Of a stretch of DNA of 64,000 nucleotides, positions 12,698 through 24,200 are shown in pieces. The stretch spans positions 53,414-117,413 of the forward strand of contig NW_005434624.1 in assembly GCF_000315625.1 (NCBI RefSeq), read 5' to 3'. Made by a program: the position numbers and the translations under genes. The first letter of the stretch is position 1; each line of letters opens with the position of its first letter. The notes under the pieces were generated by a model. The model was not told the origin of the DNA, did not search any database, and saw nothing but the letters and a program-made list of their open reading frames with translations. The stretch comes from Guillardia theta CCMP2712. Taxonomy: Eukaryota > Protista > Cryptophyta.

Positions 12698-15154
12698 ATG
12701 AGTCGCAGAACAAGCTTGCCCTCGTCGCAATGGAATGCAGATTACATCAAGCAGGGGAACAAGTTCTGCCCCGTGCCTGAGTGGCAGGTCGTGGAGAGTT
12801 TGATGAAGATGCTTGAGGCTCCGGTTGCTCGCAATCGCAAGGACGTGCAGGATGGTCTGATGACGGAGAGGGACGCTGAGAGCGCCAAGGAGCTCGCCAA
12901 GGTGACTTCCAAGATCGGAATCCTCTCCATGCTCCCCCTCTACTCCCGCGTGCAGCTCTGCAAGACCATGAACTTGTCCAAGTACCGGAGTGACGCCAGC
13001 CCTCTCTTCACGCAGCACGAGTACAGCTCGCTCTACTTCATCTGCCTCGTCGGCTCCATCGAATGTACCTCAGCTGTTCTCGCCATGTCTGCCGCCGGCC
13101 TCACGCTCCTGGCAGGCGTTGGACTCATCCATCAGGGCACCGAGCATGAGACGCGCTGGAGCAGGAGGGTGGCGGCTGGCAAAGATCTCTGGGCAGAGCT
13201 TGGTGATGCTGCGAGGAGACGTTTAGCTGCATGACTAGCGTGCAGGGCTGGGAGGAGATCATGGCTGCGTCTGCTCGGGCTATCCTCAGCCCATACGCAC
13301 AGGCTCGGTCCCCGCGACCACTGAGATCGCCAAGAGGTGAAGGAGTGGGAGAAGAGCATGCGGAGGTGATGCTGACTTGCATGGGAGGATGATGAAGCGC
13401 GTGTCCGGGTTCTGCTTCGTCCTCTCCATCTCCATGTCAGAGCTTCTTCGACAAATCAACGTCGACCCCTTCTACCTCAAGGCGATCCAGCTGGGCCTGC
13501 AGGAGGTGGCAGGCTGCTCGTCGCTCTTGGCGTCACTGACTGCTCGTAGATGGACGTGTTTGCTCACTGGGATGAACGAGACCTCCAGGTGACGCAGCTC
13601 GAGAGCTGCCGGTCAGACTCTGACGCGGGCGTGGCAGACGCTCTCCTTTCAGTTCCGTCGGCAGAAATTTCAGAGGGAGGAGGTGATAGTCTGCCGAGGC
13701 TCCAAGTCTCGCAGGTTCTACGTGGTCATCCGGGGCAAGGTGGAGCTCTCCTGGCCGCGAGCTGAGGCCCTCACGTACGGTCGCTTCCACCTGGAGCAGG
13801 CGATCAAGCAGGTCGTGTCTTCGGGGTCGCCTGACTCCTGCTTCGGCGAGGAGTCCATCTTGTCCGCTGCCTCCTCAGGTTGCGAGTACGACGCTAGGGT
13901 GATCACCAACTACGGATGCGAGCTGCTGTGGGCGGAGGCGAGTGAAGTGAAGGAGCTGCTTGCGGGGGAGACGCTTCTGAACCTCGCTGTCTTGTACAAG
14001 GCTAGGAAAGAGTCGCTCTCCTCGGGCCAGGCCACCGTCATGGCGGAGATGACGTGTGCTGCTGCGAGCGAGGAGTCAAAGAGTCCTGTGAGAGGGCGGG
14101 AGAAGAAGGGCTACTTCCTAAAGTTCGACCCCAAACCAGTGGACCCGGAGACCCCTGAACGAGGGCTGAGCCGATCCCTCGCTGACTTCTCCTCCCCCTC
14201 TGATACAGTGAGAGACCTCAAGCCACGCAGCCACGGGCTCTCTCTGACGCAGCGACAGTCAGGTGCCAAGTCGACAGGAGAAGAGATGCTGAGATCGAGC
14301 ACCAAGCGGATACTCTTCACGAGTTTTGCGAGTGAGGAAGGGGAGGACGAGAGTGCTGGAAGGGGCGAAGGCGGAGACTCACTTCCAGCTCTCATCGACC
14401 TGGACCGGATCTACCGCAACAGAGAAACAAACATGCACATGCCCATCGAAGTCAAGGAGTCGAGGCTGACGCTCTACTACGCGTTGAACAAGAAGTTTGT
14501 CAGTCAGATGCTGCGAACTCTAGAGAAGAAGCGGAACATCGAGCGAGACTACAACCGCAAGGTCCTTGCACCCTCCGCTCCCAGGTGACGGCCAAAACAT
14601 CGAGCGAGACTACAACCGCAAGGTCCTTGCACCCTCCGCTCCCAGGTGACGGCCAGACGGTGAAGGCTGGTCGGGGTGCCAGGGCAGGGGCAGGGGCAGA
14701 GGCAGGGACAGCAGTCTATCTCTGGGTTCGTGAGCAGCGGCCGATGAGAAGGACTGGAGGACGTGAGGATGTGAAGCTTGAAATGTCAGCAGCACCAGAG
14801 CGAGAGGTTCTGACACATGCTGAGGGCACTGAACCTAGCAGGGGCAGTGGCATTGGCAGGGGCAGTGGCAGGGGCAGGGGCAGGGGCAGGGGCAGGGGCA
14901 GGGGCAGGGGCAGTGGCAGTGGCAGTGGCAGGGGCAGTGGCAGGGGCAGTGGCAGGGGCAGGGGCATGATAAATCACAGAAACAACAAGGCAAGAAGATC
15001 GATCATGTGCGAGTTGAGCACATGCCAGACCTCGGAGGTCAGTCAAAGAGACAGGGAGATCGGGATGTCTCGGTACTCGCAGCTCGAGCTGATGGCAGTA
15101 GAGGAGGGTGGGGGACGTGAAGATGTTGATCAACAAGTTTATTGTACTGAATGA
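12698..15154 (+). CDS. Cyclic-nucleotide-binding domain protein (two cNMP-like domains), multi-exon
   Basis: LFTQHEYSSLYFICLVGSIEC and VIVCRGSKSRRFYVVIRGKVEL...CFGEESILS...YDARVITNYGCELLW match the cNMP fold pattern. 3' exons beyond 14588 are uncertain. Confidence 0.7.
14837..14965 (+). repeat. (GGCAGG/GGCAGT)n hexamer repeat
   Basis: About 20 tandem units. Confidence 0.9.
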
Positions 15155-15209: not shown

Positions 15210-18200
15210 TTATGAGGCGTCGCCTGGCAAGGTGACTTCCTCGGGTGCTGGCGTGAACGTGTCTCCCTGGTACTGTTGGGCCTCACTTGTGGCCGGCACA
15301 GTGGCAGGCGCAGGAGCTGAGTCGCTCATGATCGGCGTGCGGCATGTCGGGCAGCGCTTCCACGTGGGCTTGACCGGAGCCTTGCAGTTGACGCACTCGG
15401 CAGAGAAACCCATCACATCCTGCTGCGACATGCTCGACACGAACGCCTGCGCTGGCGCCGACTCCACCGTCTCCCCGGGCCTTTGAATCTTCGCTTTACA
15501 TCCTGGACACCTGGGCCAGCTTAGCTTGACGGGAGCTGAACACTGATGGCAAATGCCGCCGAAGCCTTGCTGCTCCACCAGAGTCTGAGCAGACACAGCC
15601 GACACAGAATCAACTCCAGCTGCAGCCTCGCTGATCTCCGGGTGATCGTATCCGAGAGTGGCGACCAGGTCGCGGCCCTCGGGTCGAGGAGCCTGCGCGA
15701 TGTCCGTGCGACAGTTGGGACAGCGCGGCCAAGTTGACTTGACTGGGTTGTTGCAAGCCGAGCAGTTGATCCAACTCTCCGGGAGCGCAACAGCGGAGGT
15801 GTCGAACGTGCTCGCTTGAGGAATGACGCTCGATCGCAGGGCAGAGCTGTCGTAAACGGGTTCGGAAGGCGCCTCTGCTTCGACGTCTGCCTTCTTCTTG
15901 CCTGCCTGAGCCTGCTGGAGGCGAGCGTAGTAAGCGAGCACCAGCATACCGATGAAGAAGATCGGAACTATGATGGCAGCTGCAATCACTCCCGCCTTGC
16001 TGCCGGACCCGAGCTTCGAGGGAACCACAACAATGTTCGGATCTTTGGTGAACATTGCTGCGTACGTCGAGAAGTGCTGCAAGGTGGCCGAGGCCCTTCC
16101 TGTAGCGTCAGGTCCGCTGCCGTCGACCACAACCCATCGCTCAAGGTCGCGATCGAACGTGAACACTTTGAGCACTTCATCTGCCTGGGCCTGCTGGCTC
16201 ACGCTCAGGCCCAGCACAGCTCCCTTGACGCTGATGCCATCCGGCTGCAGATCTACGACATCTCCTGCGAAGCGAACAACATCGGCGACTTGCATGGCAG
16301 GAGGGAGATCCTTGCTGTCGTACAGATCTCCCGAGACCGTTGTTGGTCCGCTAAGAGCGAAGGGAGGTAAGTAGAGGCTCGCGCCACTTGAAAGAGAGAA
16401 GGTGTAAGAGATGCTGATGTCGCTGATGTAGAATTCGAAGCTGTCCAAGGGTGTCAAAACAGTCGAGCAGTCAAGCCCAAAGTAATATCGATTGCACATA
16501 CAGTATCCTGCCTCCGCTTGGCAGCTTCCATGACCAAGGCATGTGTACTGGGCTGAGCAATAACGGCTGCACTTGGCTCCTTCCTTGGGGTTGTAAAAGT
16601 TTGCAACGCACGTACACACACTGGGTGTAGAGTTGCTGTTCTTGCAAACGAAGTTCGATTCGATAGTACAAGAACTGCTACAGCCATCTCCGCTCTTCGT
16701 GTTTCCGTCGTCACATCCCTCCACGGGGATGTAAATTCCGTCACCACAGTTGCTGACGCACTTGTTGTTGACTTTCACATACCCATATGCACAATCACAC
16801 CTGTATGACCCTTCGGTGTTGACGCAGACTTCGGATACTCTATTGCAAGTGTCGGACTGATTCTTGCACTCATCAATGTCTCTACAATACCCTGATTCAG
16901 AGGCAGAGGCGTTGTACAGCTCGTAACCAGGTGGGCACGTTGGCCAGTCAAGACACATCGAGTTCCCTGTCGTGTTCTTGTACTTGCCATATGGGCATGG
17001 CAAGCAATCGGCTCCGGAGGGGTAGGTGCCTGGTCCACAGGATGATCCACAGACCGCCGATCCCGCCACCGAACTTGTTCCGTTGGGACAAGGAGTACAT
17101 ACGGAGTCCCAACTGCCACGATCAGGCTTGAATGTTCCTGCCGCGCATGGGCTGCAAATGCCTACTCCGTCCACGGTGTTGGAGACGCAGCCAGAACGGT
17201 ACTGTCCAGGTGCGCATGGAGCACAGCAAATTGAGTATGTTCCGGATCCGGGGTCCCTCCAGCAATCAGCACCAGGCTCCACTTGACAGGATGCGGAGCA
17301 GCCGTCCAAGGACACAAGGTTGCCATCGTCGCACGTCTCGTTTTGGCTAATCTTCTTGTCTCCGCAGTCCGCAAGCGCAGGGTCTAACGCTGCGAAAAAC
17401 TCGGTGAGGTGATTACAACGGCAGGTCACAGACGTGTCCGATCTGTCAAAGACTATGCATCCCTGAAACCTGAATTGTTTGGTTGTGGGATCCAAGAAAG
17501 CGCATGACAACTTGTTTTTCCACCCAGCAACACCAAGAGCTGTGACGAGTTGAGGGTCTACAGGGATGACAACTGTGAAAGGAGAAGTAAGGTCCGATAC
17601 TGTTGCTTGAGTGCTTGAGTCTTGAGTAGCAAGCATAAGCGCGACCGAGGATTGGGACAACAAGTCGATGCTAGACACTTTGTTCAAGTTCGAGCGAACT
17701 CCTTGAAACATGATGATCTTGTAGACATTGCTAGGCAAAGGGGAGAGAGATTGAGGGACCGTGAAATACCCAGTACCGGCAGCAGCAACTTGCAACGAAG
17801 TAGCAACTAGAGGAAAATTTGCCTTGGTTGTGGTCAAGTTGTGCAAGGAATTTCCAGTGAAGGTGTATAGTTCTCCTGCTGCAATCACTTTTGCATATCC
17901 TTCGGCTATCGGGAACGTGCTCGCGTGCCTGTCGATGAGAAACTGAATGAGTTGCGACTCGGAGAGCACTACAGGCTCAGAAGAATAAGGGCAGACCGAG
18001 AGGGCGCCTGAAATCGATCCCATGAAGATCGCAAAGTTTTGATTCATTGTGGTGCTGAAGGAATCTCTACTCATATCCGTTGAAGATGCAGCCTTTGCCA
18101 CTGAGACCGCACCATTGAACGTCGTATTTGAGATCAGACAAGGTGTTGGGATAGCACTAGCTCCAGCTTGAATGGTCTCTTCAGCATAGTCTTTTGTCAG

Positions 18201-21200
18201 GGCCGCATATGTAACAGCATACGAGAGGTTGAGAATGAGATCTTGTCGGTACTTGGCCTCATCCGTTGCCTGCAGTGTTGTACCAGCGATGGTGTTCCCG
18301 AGGTTTGACACAAGTTGGTTCACCGTGGACGCGCTCTTGAGCTGGTAAGCATCATTCAAAGCGGTCATTCCGTTCCCTATGTCATCTTGCACCGCAAGCA
18401 ATCGACGACGACCAGCGCTGCTCGATATAGTGATCATAGTGGATCCAGCATCGGCTGCGGCACCAAGAGAATCCAGAACCTGCGCAATCGTCAACGAGAA
18501 AATATGAAAAGCATGAAGTAGTACCTTGGCTGTGACAACGACTTGTCCTCGTGGTAATACCATATCCAGGTAGTTGATTGGTGACGGGCTGAAATCAAGC
18601 TTCTTCGCATTGATGGTGACGCCAAACATGAAGCTCAAGGGAAGATCGGCGTCAATCCAGTTAGAGCAAGTAGTTCTGAAGTAGTCCTTGTAGGCGATTC
18701 CAGTCGTCTCGCATGTCGTTGACGTTGATACTTTACATGTCTGGCACGTTCCTGAGCTTGGCGGACGATTGACCAGCAGGTTGATGGAAGATGAGCCAAC
18801 TCGACCTTGATTGTCCGTTACTCTGAGCGTGAACTGATATTCGACCCCAGCAGTGAGGATTGGCGAGCTTGACAGGTCCAAACGCAGCACAAAGTTGATT
18901 TTATTGCTTCCGAGGGGAACAAGATTTTGAGACAAGGTGGTGAAGGAAATTCCGTTATTCGCGGTCCAGGAGTACTGACTGATCTGACTAGCAGGCACGT
19001 CGATGACACCTCCGAGGTTGATTCTTGCGTCGGGGTTGATTTTACTCAACCCCAACTTTGCATCAAAAGGCATGTCTCTCGTTTGAATGCCAACAGAAGG
19101 AATTCTTGTAGAGACCATATACACGTTGACGCTGGATGAGGCAGGAATTTTGCCTGTTTTAGATACAGTGACAGTGAAAATGAAGTAGTTGGACCCTGTC
19201 GAGGTCAGTGTGTCTGCAGCAATCGTTAAGATTCGCGCTGTTTCAAGTGTGACTGCATTGCCATCTTTGGTCAGGCAAGGAAGTTGGGTTCCAGAGACCG
19301 TCTGCAGAACACAAGTCCATGCAAATTTCAGGAGGGCATCGGTCTTGCGCTCACTGAGGCGCAGATCAGGATCGTACGAACCGGAAGCATCCAGATTCAA
19401 CTGCGATAGAGTTGAAATCGTGATGGTAGTTCCTGATGCGATCTTTGAAAACAGAGGTGTGGCTTTGACGTTGATGTCTACACTCGCCGAAACTCTTTTA
19501 GAGATATCTCCATCCATCGACATAGTCAGCGAGACCTTATACTTTCCAGGCGCCTGCGTGCCTGGTTTGAGGTACATCTGCGATTTATCTGACACTTGAG
19601 TGCTAGTTGTGGTGTCCGACAAAACCCACGCGAAGCTAAGGGCACTCTTGGAAGTTTGACAGAGAGAGAACTTGGCTTCTCCTCGCAAGAGGATCGGGTC
19701 GTTCACAGAGTATGACGTACTCCCCTCTATCAAAACTGTTGGGATAGGTGAAGCTTGTTTCGTAAGAGTGAAAAACTTCGTATCAGATTGAACTCCAAGA
19801 AAGTCTGTGGCTTGAACTGAAATTTTATACTGAAAGTTCGTCTCCAGTAGCGCAGGAGTCCCAGCAGGCATCGAAATTTGGTTTGAAGTCAAGAACAGCA
19901 AGATTGAGTTGAGACTGTCGCTGTTGCTGCTGCTCCAGGTGTACTTGAGAGGTCGAGGGGAGGCGATGGAGAAGACAATTCTCAATGCTGAGCATGAGTC
20001 AATGACAGCTGGTCCTGTCAGAATTCCTGGACCAGGAACAAGCTGAACTTTGGGTGGTTCTATCCGGAGAGGTTGTGTCAGAGGGACAGAAAACGAGGAA
20101 ATAAGATTCTCCGACTTCAAGAAATTGTTCTTCAAATTCATAAAGTCGCCAGGCACGATCGTTGCACTTTTACCAAGCTTGATAATCAAACGTTTGGTTG
20201 TCTGCCAGACACACGTGTAACCAGATCCAAGCCCTGTGACATCTAGGAATGAACAGTCAGCTGAAAGAGACTTGCCATTGGTCTGCTGGTCGAATTCCAC
20301 TTCGATAGCATCTCCCGCCGATTGAAAGCGCGCGCTCAAGAGAAGAGGAGCGAAGTAGATGTCATAGGATCCTGTGTAGAAGAGCGACGGGGAGCTCAAG
20401 TATGAGACCTTGATTGGGACGCTTGCCTTCCCTTCGATCACTGATAGTTCCGATCTAGTGAAGGTTGGAAGGGAGGCAACAATAACGTCCAATTGCGTGT
20501 AGCTTGCACTGGTGTACCAAGAGACCGAGCGAGGTTCCTTCGCTCCAAACTCGACCTTCAAATTGCTCAGCATATCTGTATTTGCAGGATTCACCCCAGG
20601 CAGGTACATGTACACAGATCCAACTGCTGGGCCTTGGCAGGTCACAGAGGCTAACGCCCCAGCTTGGGGAGTTCGGCAATATACTATGAGTTGCTGATCG
20701 TAAACGAGGACTGAGAAATCAAGTGTGGAGAAAGCAGATACTACAATGTTTCCGGATAGAGTTCCTGTCTTATCGAAAGGCTTCGGTTGTATCTGAAAGA
20801 CATATGACGACGATGAGGAGAAGACATTAAAAATGTCACTGCCGGAAAAATATGTTCCTTGTATTGACATCTGGAAACTTTGATCTATCACAGCATTTTC
20901 AAGTGTGACAGTCAAAATTCCACCGCCGCGGAGTGGCAAGGTACAATCTGTGTCAGATGATCGGATGGGTTCTGATCCGTCGCTACACAAACCTCCAGAA
21001 ATACAAATTTTGCCTGGTACACATGTGGGACAGTAATCCATGGCAACAAGTGCAGCAGACGGTTGGTAATATTCAAACACCAAGCCACTGATCGCCCTTC
21101 TTTGTTCCCTCACGTAGACTTGATCTGCTGTGAACCCCGCTGGTACCTCTCCTCGACCACGAAAGGTAACGGTCAACGAGACGGACCCTGCGCTGTGGGG

Positions 21201-24200
21201 GGGAACAGACGATGAAATGTAGAGTCCATCCGACCATCTCACAGCATCCAAAACCGCGCACTTCACGTTGTCACAGACCGTACTTCCGAATTGAACTTGC
21301 ACTTCACTGATGTCTTGAATGGCTGGCGCCTTGGAGATCCATATGCCCACGGCGTTCTGCTGGTCGGATAGACAGATGGAACAAGCTCCTACGGTGCCAC
21401 CCACAGTAGCCGAAGAGGGAACAACATTGACAAACGTTGGAGGATCGTAGATCTCGAAAGACAAAGTTTCATAGCTTGTCTCCCCCAAGTTGTTTGCTGA
21501 CAAGATCTTGACCTACGCAAATTAGAATCAGTACTACATCTACGTGAAGAAGTCAAACTCACCTGAACATAGCCAACCTTGAGGCCAAGAGGAACGACTG
21601 CAGTCACGTTCGAGATTGTACCAGCTTCGTTGTCAGCTATCTTGGTGACGACGGCGTTTATTCCTGAGAAAGTAACCGTGACAGTTGTTGGCTGTAAGAA
21701 AAGATCCCAGAACACCGTGAAAACGACAGAACCCCCGCCGAGCTGGCTTGAATCCACTGGAGTAGGGTGAGCAGGAGTACGGACAACAAGGAAATCGAAT
21801 GGCATGGGGTCCATGAATGAATCTATGATATACACTGAAGCATTCAGCAACCTTGAAGGTTGGCCAAAGAGTCGCAAGTTGCCAACATTAAACGTAATCA
21901 CGTCCATGCCCGAACTAGCTGAAGTGGTATGACTGATGGCAGTGACCACTGACTCTCCGAACTGCCCCTGAATTCTCGCAAGACTGTAATCTTTTGTTTG
22001 ATCCTTGGGGAAGTAACGGATGTAGACGTTGACGGTGATGACGTCAACAACGTTCCCTACCGAGGGCGACACCAGATCGACTTTGGGCGCATTGAGGTCT
22101 ATAAGCTTCACTGCGAATGAAGCACATTTAGCTGTCGGTCCAGATCCTGCACAAACCCTGAAAGTTGTTGAAAGGGCTGATTCTGAGGTAGGCAGTGTCA
22201 AAGAAAACTGTACGTTCGACAAAGGACAACTGGGATCCGCAGAGTCTGTGCTCAAGACGGTTGCCCCTTGCGGTTGTACTGATGTCGTACTAGAGACAGT
22301 AGGAGCTAAGGTTCCAAGATAGCAGATTGCAGCTTGAAACGAGGTTGTAGTTCCTTTCCTCATCTCCAAGGGATAGATTGACCTTGCAACAGGTTCTGGG
22401 TAGACAGACAGAGTGAAAGGAAACCTTCCAGCCCTGGTGGTAGGAAAGAGACTGTAGCCAACCGATATATTGTAATTTCCCGCTTGTGGTACCGCAGATA
22501 CTTGAAATGTGCAGAGAGTGGAGGTTGCGTCGGACTTGATAATCGATGTGGCGGTTATCAGTGAGTTTGCTACACCATCAATTGATAAGTACAACTTGCT
22601 AAGTGCGTCTTGACTGGTCAAAGGAGCAGGAACGACAGGAATGTTGCCAATTTCAACCTTGAACGACAAGCTCTGCTCGTTGGTGAAGGCTTGCTTCGGG
22701 CTGGCAAACAAGATGAGAGCAGGCCCGCTGGAAAAAACCAATAAAGTCAAAAAATCAGAAACGAAACATCAGCCATACCTCAAAGGAGTCTTGTACAAGA
22801 ATGAAAAGGAAGTGGACTTCGTCAGTCTGCCATAAGCAAAGGAGAGCTGAACATCGGTAGAAGTGGCTCCCATGGGCGCCTGAGGCATCGTGAAGTTCAT
22901 CTCAACATTCGAATTCAAGCCATCACTGGTCAGGTACTTGAACCCAACGATCTTGGCGTAAGAAGGAAACGATGCTGACCCAACCATAATTGTGACATCT
23001 TGCTGTGACAGAGCAGGAAATCCAAATAGAATCGCACGCACACTCGTGCCGCCACTCGTGAGCCCTGTAGTAGGCTCGACAACGGACAGGAATGGTGTGG
23101 GAACTTGAGATCGATCCAGACAGAATTGAAGGTTGCAAGTAGCAGAGTCCGCTAGTGCTTGGATTTTGAGCAAGTCAGGGAACTTGGAACCGCAAGCTTC
23201 ATCGTAGTCGCAAGGGGCCTGGAATTCGAAATCAAAATCAACAATCTTCACCGAGTTTTGGTAGACACTGGCCACAATGCTCCAGAAGATTGAAACAGCT
23301 GGAACTGTGACAGAGATTTTGGCCAAGGCGATTGAACTAGCAGAGGTTATGTCAGCACCGTCTGCTGACCAAATGTCGGTATTTTGCACTTGCACTACAG
23401 TTCCACCAAAGTTGACAGTGACTGGAAGGTTGTAATTGAATGGTTTGAAATTGCTGATTGTGAGAATAATGTTGGAACCACCCGTGTTGAGCGAAGTCGA
23501 TTTCGAAATTGAAACCAGTCTAGGAACCGTACAGTCAATCACTCGGAACGCAGCAGTTGCGGTCAAAGAGCCACTCGTGACAACAATATTGTCACTGGAA
23601 ATAACCTTAATAGCCTCGGTGATTGTCACTTGTAGAATTGTTAACAATGTTGTGTTATCATACTTCGTGACAACAAAGGGAAGGTTCTTTGTGTAGAACA
23701 CACTGCTGACTGCATTCGGGTCAAGATTCTTCACGTAGACATATTGGACAACATTAGTGCAGGTCGTGCAAGCACAAATCTCAGTGGGAGTTGGAGTTAC
23801 AATCTGCAATGCAACGGGATTGACAGCAAGTACGCTGAAACCAACTGCCCCGGCAGTTCCAAGTCGTCTTGGATACATCGTGCCTGAAACATTTCCAGCA
23901 GAAGGCAAGGGAGGCACAACGAATGACACAATGGTCTCACTACAGACACTTGAGACCAAAGAAATATTTTGGGCTGGTGTGGATCCGAGATATACCAAAA
24001 TCTCTGAAGAGACTGTCACAACAGGAAAGTTCGATATAACGATGTTGATTGTTTGTCCGCCCGTCGTCTGCACTTGAGTGCTTGAAATAGATTTCAGGAA
24101 GACTGAAGCTGTCAAGTAGTTGAACAAAAACTCGACATACTTGCGAGGGAATTGGAATGGTGTCAATTTGACATAATAAACTCCTTGAGAAACTGCAGGT

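Follow-up and report, generated by a model that had tools for sequence, protein, structure and literature searches.

Does a single surface protein of a unicellular alga carry two self-cleaving modules, one after the other, on the outer side of its membrane? The question is raised by an open reading frame (ORF) of the cryptophyte Guillardia theta CCMP2712, found on the minus strand of a 64,000-nucleotide stretch of contig NW_005434624.1 (positions 53,414 to 117,413; this whole stretch is called the window, and positions are counted from its first letter). The frame is uninterrupted over 2097 codons (window 15210-21503). An earlier note on this DNA, made from the letters alone, had proposed three candidate cleavage sites in series within its product: a subtilase site RRRLL, a GPS motif cut at HL|T and a ZU5-type motif cut at HF|S. 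GAIN autoproteolysis is well studied for adhesion G-protein-coupled receptors (GPCRs) and for polycystin-1, and that of ZU5 for PIDD1 and NLRP1/CARD8. To our knowledge, hardly any of this work is on organisms other than animals, and that on ZU5 is confined to the cytosol. We report that the GAIN and ZU5 domains are real, that their motifs are conserved, and that they probably act as two serial self-cutting modules.

All three motif strings are present in this frame, as found by translating the minus-strand ORF and mapping the translation back to the DNA, and the positions given in the earlier note were near-exact. AGRRRLLA corresponds to residues 1030-1037 of the ORF (window 18393-18416, minus strand; given as ~18395-18420), CRCNHLTEF to residues 1361-1369 (17397-17423, with HLT at 17403-17411; given as ~17395-17420), and HFS, for which the position given (16068-16076) was exact, to residues 1810-1812, within ATLQHFSTYA (16059-16088). 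Two other strings named for the ZU5-like region, GASLYLPPFAL and VVDLQPDG, lie at 16353-16385 and 16236-16259, respectively. The transmembrane helix covers residues 1838-1860, which puts HFS 26 residues from the membrane, on its outer side. Chance occurrence of the motifs was evaluated with 5000 composition-preserving shuffles of the 1837-residue ectodomain. The pattern C.C.HL[ST].F was reached in 0 of the 5000, and shuffling gave an expectation of 0.0034 for HFS.[YFW]. The whole ectodomain has only 8 His, 2 of which are found within H[LF][ST]. Given the shuffle results, the GPS and HFS motifs are far beyond chance, and both are located within recognisable domains.

The proposal of a ZU5 domain with HF|S directly outside the membrane was borne out by profiles, fold modelling and conservation. 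Six paralogous copies of the ZU5 segment were found in the G. theta genome (87.1 Mb, 669 contigs searched). All seven sequences match Pfam ZU5, the best at 2.8e-9, and all seven end with H/S-F-S followed by an aromatic residue. One own-genome paralogue is identical to GUITHDRAFT_115185, and the UniRef label of one G. theta paralogue is 'ZU5 domain-containing protein'. An exhaustive HMMER search with the alignment of the own-genome copies yielded 4,928 relatives at E <= 1e-3. A leave-out profile, built from 74 relatives and free of G. theta sequences, scores residues 1701-1821 of the ORF at 64.8 bits (E 3.9e-22), and an 80-sequence family profile matches ZU5 domains of the PDB with E values from 2.5e-13 to 7e-3, among them ankyrins (2.5e-13), ZO-1 (1.8e-8) and UNC5B.

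Modelling of the fold, a check that the earlier note had suggested, gave the same answer. AlphaFold2, supplied with the 80 sequences, produced a ZU5 beta-sandwich with a predicted local distance difference test (pLDDT) of 95.1 and a predicted template modelling score (pTM) of 0.88. A model from 7 sequences only (pLDDT 44.8) was discarded in favour of this one. Foldseek placed the ZU5 domains of ankyrin and UNC5B at the top, followed by GAIN domains and the FIIND of NLRP1. In the ESM Atlas, the nearest models were bacterial SpvB/Rhs toxin ZU5 domains (template modelling (TM) score 0.84) and vertebrate PIDD1 (TM score 0.83, root mean square deviation 1.9 A). HFS corresponds to residues 125-127 of the model, in a tight turn between the final two strands (119-125 and 128-134). 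This turn between the penultimate and last strands matches the geometry given for the GAIN scissile bond (PMC3321182).

Conservation of HFS among homologues was equally clear. In the 80-sequence alignment the Phe is invariant (80/80) and the His is conserved at 90% or more. Triplets were then counted in 198 near-complete domains, taken from the 150 best representatives of the family: HFS was found in 124 and HFT in 31 (155 of the 198 together), HLT or HLS in 9 and SFS, the CARD8/NLRP1 variant, in 9, while 13 had none of these. H-[FL]-[ST] was kept in 164 of the 198 domains (83%). Since non-cleaving animal ZU5 domains lack the triplet, its retention here argues for catalysis over structure alone.

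The other module, for which the earlier note had claimed a GPS motif cut at HL|T, is a GAIN/GPS domain carrying HLT, as judged from Pfam GPS, profile matches and the alignment of homologues. A GAIN profile made from a 4-homologue alignment matches solved GAIN domains of adhesion GPCRs (ADGRF1, 4.7e-8; ADGRG6, 1.8e-7). The ADGRG6 match spans positions 117-352 of the 353 of the profile (236 positions), for an expected domain of ~320 residues comprising helical subdomain A and beta subdomain B. The ESM-Atlas feature neighbours of the region are GPS/GAIN-B clusters. A word-index search with residues 1040-1380, to which index and length-window limits apply, gave no match at E <= 1e-3; relatives were found later with HMMER. 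In the GPS alignment of the window protein, a paralogue on contig C121 of the same genome (L011) and two further proteins, the metagenomic P0020 and P0091 (assembly GCA_041443065.1), the first Cys, a G-C pair and T-C-x-C-x-H-L-T-x-F are invariant, so that HLT is kept in 4 of 4 GAIN homologues. The domain is not juxtamembrane: 471 residues separate T1367 from the transmembrane helix. The identity of the domains, the modelled fold of ZU5, and the position and conservation of the motifs stand as observations.

In one respect the two modules differ from what had been proposed. They had been described as unrelated, and this is not the case: GAIN-B and ZU5 are homologous. Zhang et al. 2012 assigned ZU5 and GPS to one superfamily together with the Nup98 autoprotease (PMC3482391), and Liao et al. 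2014, as quoted in PMC9539791 and PMC11697300, came to the same conclusion. Comparison of our ZU5 and GAIN profiles with hhalign gave a probability of 91.9% (E 7e-7) over 62 columns, with HLT aligned on HFS, and the ZU5 leave-out profile has a weak second match at residues 1306-1373, again with HFS on HLT. A recent internal duplication was considered as the origin of the pair and rejected, as the ZU5 profile gives 65 bits for ZU5 but only 8 for the GPS region. We conclude from these profile comparisons that the GAIN and ZU5 domains of this protein appear to derive from one autoproteolytic beta-sandwich and to have diverged anciently. The view that HF|S autoproteolysis normally takes place inside cells also needs to be restricted, to animals, as ZU5 autopeptidases of the bacterial surface have been published. 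Such enzymes are described as widespread among polymorphic toxins and among the processed proteins of bacterial cell surfaces (PMC3482391; bioRxiv 10.1101/2024.03.27.587046).

The reading we favour, with moderate confidence, is that the protein carries two serial self-cutting modules, predicted to cut at H-L|T1367 and then, 445 residues later, at H-F|S1812. In each domain, the triplet His-hydrophobic-Ser/Thr would lie where the chain kinks between its penultimate and its last strand. The proposed chemistry is taken by analogy from GAIN, PIDD1, NLRP1/CARD8 and Nup98: an N-to-O acyl shift, in which the carbonyl ahead of the Ser/Thr is attacked by its hydroxyl, would give an ester that is then hydrolysed, and the cut would leave the last strand docked in its sandwich. 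Because two such self-cuts with docked strands are proposed, up to three non-covalently joined chains are predicted: a giant adhesive fragment at the N-terminus, a middle piece of 445 residues (T1367 to F1811) containing the Cys-rich repeats and the ZU5 core, and a membrane stub made of the transmembrane helix with its zinc-ribbon tail. From the motifs and their setting we infer that the protein is cut and that its chains stay associated, and likewise any shedding, whether staged or dependent on force.

Alternatively, both domains may be real, with one or both of them incompetent for cleavage and serving as rigid spacers or binding modules in a protein of one or two chains. We consider this possible, and on the unlikely side. 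Several facts weigh against the favoured reading. A large number of ZU5 domains in animals, such as those of ankyrin, UNC5 and ZO-1, do not cleave at all, and such non-cleaving domains are the top PDB matches of ours. In Pfam PF00791 the window ZU5 alone scores 12.1 bits (E 0.24), under the 21-bit cut-off, and a ZU5 call from this score alone is not yet secure. RNA support is almost nil: in the raw RNA of one run, 5 reads fell on the gene, with no splice joints, and the 2011 contigs, which are colinear with the genome, may be DNA rather than RNA. The window GPS lacks both canonical Trp (CAFLD and QFRFQGC, with Leu and Phe instead), which the polycystin-like paralogues with several transmembrane helices, and P0091, retain. 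An intact HL|T is no guarantee of cleavage, as some GAIN domains have one and stay uncleaved, such as that of BAI3 in human embryonic kidney (HEK) cells (PMC3321182), and the His at position -2 is neither strictly required nor diagnostic (PMC9539791). However, the ZU5 family has kept its triplets to the extent counted above, with F in every aligned sequence, and conservation of this degree would be difficult to account for if the domains were inert. In the GAIN homologues, HLT is likewise invariant, and the closest folds in the Atlas are not those of inert domains: they are the known self-cleaving PIDD1 and the toxin-type ZU5.

A third cut, at RRRLL or at the Arg cluster of the REJ/GAIN junction, by a genuine subtilase (S1P-like or dibasic-specific) seems improbable to us. 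The word is there, as the earlier note had said, and by composition RRR (0.04 expected in the ectodomain) and exact RRLL (0.01 expected) are rare in this Arg-poor ectodomain. In P0091, an Arg-rich stretch including RRRRL lies about as far upstream of the GPS, and the G. theta genome encodes ~20 S8 subtilase genes (27 exon-level matches), whose specificity cannot be read from these matches. The site is nevertheless absent in 2 of the 3 homologues, the C121 paralogue and P0020, and an error of gene modelling may account for the N-terminus of P0091. Matches to the loose S1P consensus R-x-hydrophobic-[LTKF] are as frequent as chance predicts, 4 in the ectodomain for 4.4 expected. No P-domain (kexin/furin-type) convertase was found in the G. 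theta genome, and no subtilase was identified as an S1P orthologue. RRRLL, which was chosen post hoc, is most likely a compositional oddity, and not a conserved processing site. Finally, a reading of the motifs as tripeptides that arose by chance in an ORF which is misannotated or whose product is unstructured, for which the very low RNA coverage is the sole point, is already refuted by the 2097-codon open frame, several Pfam domains well over threshold, the fold model with pLDDT 95, the shuffles for the GPS pattern and a fragment, 82% identical, in the transcriptome of Hanusia phi.

Two self-cutting modules in one ectodomain can be compared with several known systems. In polycystin-1, sea-urchin REJ and PKDREJ, the REJ domain is likewise followed directly by GAIN, with a GPS ending in C-x-C-x-H-L-T-x-F, in a large adhesive ectodomain. 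Those proteins have 11 transmembrane helices plus PLAT, whereas the window protein has a single hydrophobic helix and no Pfam match to PLAT; its GAIN is moved away from the membrane by Cys-rich repeats and ZU5, its GPS Trp are replaced, and it has a zinc-ribbon tail. The self-cleaving ZU5 domains of PIDD1, UNC5CL and the NLRP1/CARD8 FIIND also have an H/S-F-S triplet in the turn that leads into the last strand. They are cytosolic, have UPA and death-fold domains after them and act in PIDDosome or inflammasome signalling, whereas the window ZU5 is on the extracellular Cys-rich side, without UPA, and a stalk of 13 residues connects it to the membrane helix. The bacterial ZU5 autopeptidases (PMC3482391) are extracytoplasmic, as here, and have the HFS/HFT motif at their C-terminus. 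SpvB/Rhs ZU5 is the nearest structural neighbour, and bacterial proteins, including one from a proteobacterial metagenome-assembled genome, supply many of the best ZU5 sequence matches. In contrast to them, the window domain is juxtamembrane in a eukaryotic type-I protein, together with REJ and GAIN, and has no toxin cargo. Lastly, the GAIN of adhesion GPCRs with its tethered Stachel strand and, as functional analogues, SEA-domain mucins and Notch are comparable in design: a self-cleaving module next to the membrane would leave the large ectodomain attached through one docked beta-strand only, which suits mechanical release. SEA has a different fold from GAIN and ZU5. Compared to adhesion GPCRs, the strand of the window protein precedes a single helix and not a seven-transmembrane bundle, so that a tethered-agonist mechanism would have no obvious receiver.

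The two modules are rarely combined. We counted at least 8 loci with GPS in the G. theta genome and at least 27 that are ZU5-like, and both modules occur in one frame at 2 loci only, the window gene and the C121 paralogue, in which the order is REJ, GAIN (CACNHLTSF), Cys-rich, ZU5 (VDHFTVF), mucin-like stalk and transmembrane helix. Four other GPS loci (L012, L014, L015 and L016, on contigs C58, C37, C1 and C8) have C.CFHLTDF with both Trp kept, and a transmembrane helix 26-36 residues after the GPS followed by more helices, which is the classical polycystin-like juxtamembrane GAIN. Given this spacing at the classical loci, the window ZU5 holds the juxtamembrane place usual for GAIN, and GAIN has been displaced from it. 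At a further locus (L013, G000:C23:288700-292200), the GPS reads CACNHLTSF and is followed by ~300 residues without ZU5 match, a Gly/Ala-rich stretch and a single transmembrane helix; this is a third way to set GAIN apart from the membrane. Most of the ZU5-like loci show a recurring cassette of DUF4215, EGF-like, ZU5, Ser-Thr-Pro stalk and transmembrane helix. Together, to judge from sequence, the ZU5-like loci represent a lineage-specific expansion of a predicted surface autopeptidase of bacterial type.

Outside G. theta, the metagenomic P0020 (3660 residues) has REJ, GAIN, ZU5, a transmembrane helix and the zinc-ribbon tail motif as in the window protein, and P0091 shares GAIN, DUF4215, ZU5 and the transmembrane helix. 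Among 147 representative ZU5 relatives, a transmembrane-like segment was found in 37, at a median of 30 residues past ZU5, and an N-terminal hydrophobic segment in 54; the ten juxtamembrane-ZU5 relatives that were looked up are metagenomic. On a speculative reading, these 37 relatives may represent a widespread, undescribed class of self-cleaving single-pass protist receptors. In other metagenomic proteins (P0010, P0012, P0013, P0042 and P0145), tandem arrays of ZU5-like domains end with C-G-x-T-D-H-[FL]-T-N-F-A-[IV]-L-L, an ending which looks like a form midway between the GPS motif and the HFS tail of ZU5. The component families and their homology are already known. In the literature that we searched, neither a eukaryotic extracellular juxtamembrane ZU5 with intact HFS nor the combination of ZU5 and GAIN in one ectodomain was described.

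What could such an arrangement be for? One answer, speculative and in our view doubtful as it stands, is that an extracellular ZU5 took over the juxtamembrane docked-strand role of GAIN in single-pass protist receptors, so that GAIN and ZU5 would function as serial mechanical fuses. A pull on the ectodomain would first free the N-terminal fragment at HL|T and then the middle piece at HF|S, exposing a STYAAMF stub, which could license further processing or signalling via the zinc-ribbon tail. Whatever the function, two versions of one ancient fold share an ectodomain in a unicellular alga, with ZU5 in the membrane-proximal place. If both cut, the protein would be a natural three-chain receptor and a tractable system for the working of the ancestral autoproteolytic fold outside the cell. 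It would then bear on whether self-cleavage next to the membrane, as a means of mechanical release, is older than animals, and on what GAIN does once it is no longer coupled to a multi-pass membrane domain. Should neither cut, the protein would still be a clear case of a bacterial-type surface ZU5 expanded in a eukaryote.

The gene around these modules was reconstructed as follows (Table 1). The 2097-codon frame is the last exon of the gene of a giant single-pass surface protein. A canonical 50-nucleotide intron, GTGAGT...GCGTAG (window 21513-21562, minus strand), links it with an upstream frame at 21389-22750, and on this basis the gene extends to ~32.9 kb. The frames farther upstream, up to that point, encode TIG, FN3 and Cys-rich repeats, and the first exon is signal-peptide-like. 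The order in this giant type-I surface protein is signal peptide, Cys-rich/FN3/TIG repeats, REJ, GAIN, Cys-rich EGF/DUF4215 spacer, ZU5, transmembrane helix and zinc-ribbon tail. This topology is supported by the Cys-rich EGF-type domains located N-terminal of the helix, by the positive cluster after it and by the first exon. Pfam matches in the spacer (DUF4215, 3.2e-10; EGF_CA, 2.3e-8; EGF_2) are above or near threshold.

Table 1. Features of the 2097-codon exon, from N- to C-terminus, with window coordinates and ORF residue numbers.
Feature	Window position	Strand	Residues and basis
REJ domain	18360..19637	-	623-1048; Pfam REJ PF02010, E 2.6e-40, 138.8 bits
Probable in-frame 45-nucleotide intron (GTACTA...GCGCAG) within REJ	18480..18524	-	DNA reading; codes 15 residues, V + LLHAFHIFSLTIAQ
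RRRLL at REJ/GAIN junction, proposed subtilase site, unsupported	18396..18410	-	1032-1036
GAIN domain	17379..18386	-	approx. 1040-1375; profile matches and ESM-Atlas feature neighbours
GPS motif, four Cys, predicted scissile bond L1366|T1367	17397..17507	-	1333-1369; Pfam GPS 26.6-30.5 bits, cut-off 22.5
Cys-rich spacer, GAIN to ZU5	16419..17378	-	1376-1695, 40 Cys; DUF4215 repeats, calcium-binding EGF, EGF-like
ZU5 domain	16032..16448	-	1686-1824 as modelled; hidden Markov model match 1701-1821
H1810-F1811-S1812, predicted scissile bond F|S	16068..16076	-	model turn and family conservation
Last beta-strand TYAAMFT	16047..16067	-	1813-1819; DSSP strand 128-134 of model, pLDDT above 90
Single transmembrane helix	15924..15992	-	1838-1860, then RLQQAQAGKKK; read directly from sequence
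Cytoplasmic tail, three C4 zinc ribbons	15213..15923	-	Pfam DZR 8.9e-9, 3 stretches

Two details of the coding region deserve mention. The 15-residue insert within REJ has no counterpart in the C121 paralogue and probably represents a mini-intron that the ORF reads through. In the cytoplasmic tail, the zinc-ribbon repeat W-x-x-C-x-x-C-x-x-P-V-K-x-[ST]-W-P-R-C-P is common to the window protein and the C-terminus of P0020, which suggests that the tail was co-inherited with the REJ-GAIN-ZU5 ectodomain. Just downstream of the gene (window ~14716-15136) lies a simple-sequence tract, both strands of which read as long pseudo-ORFs (PLPL, GRGRGS and APAPAT).

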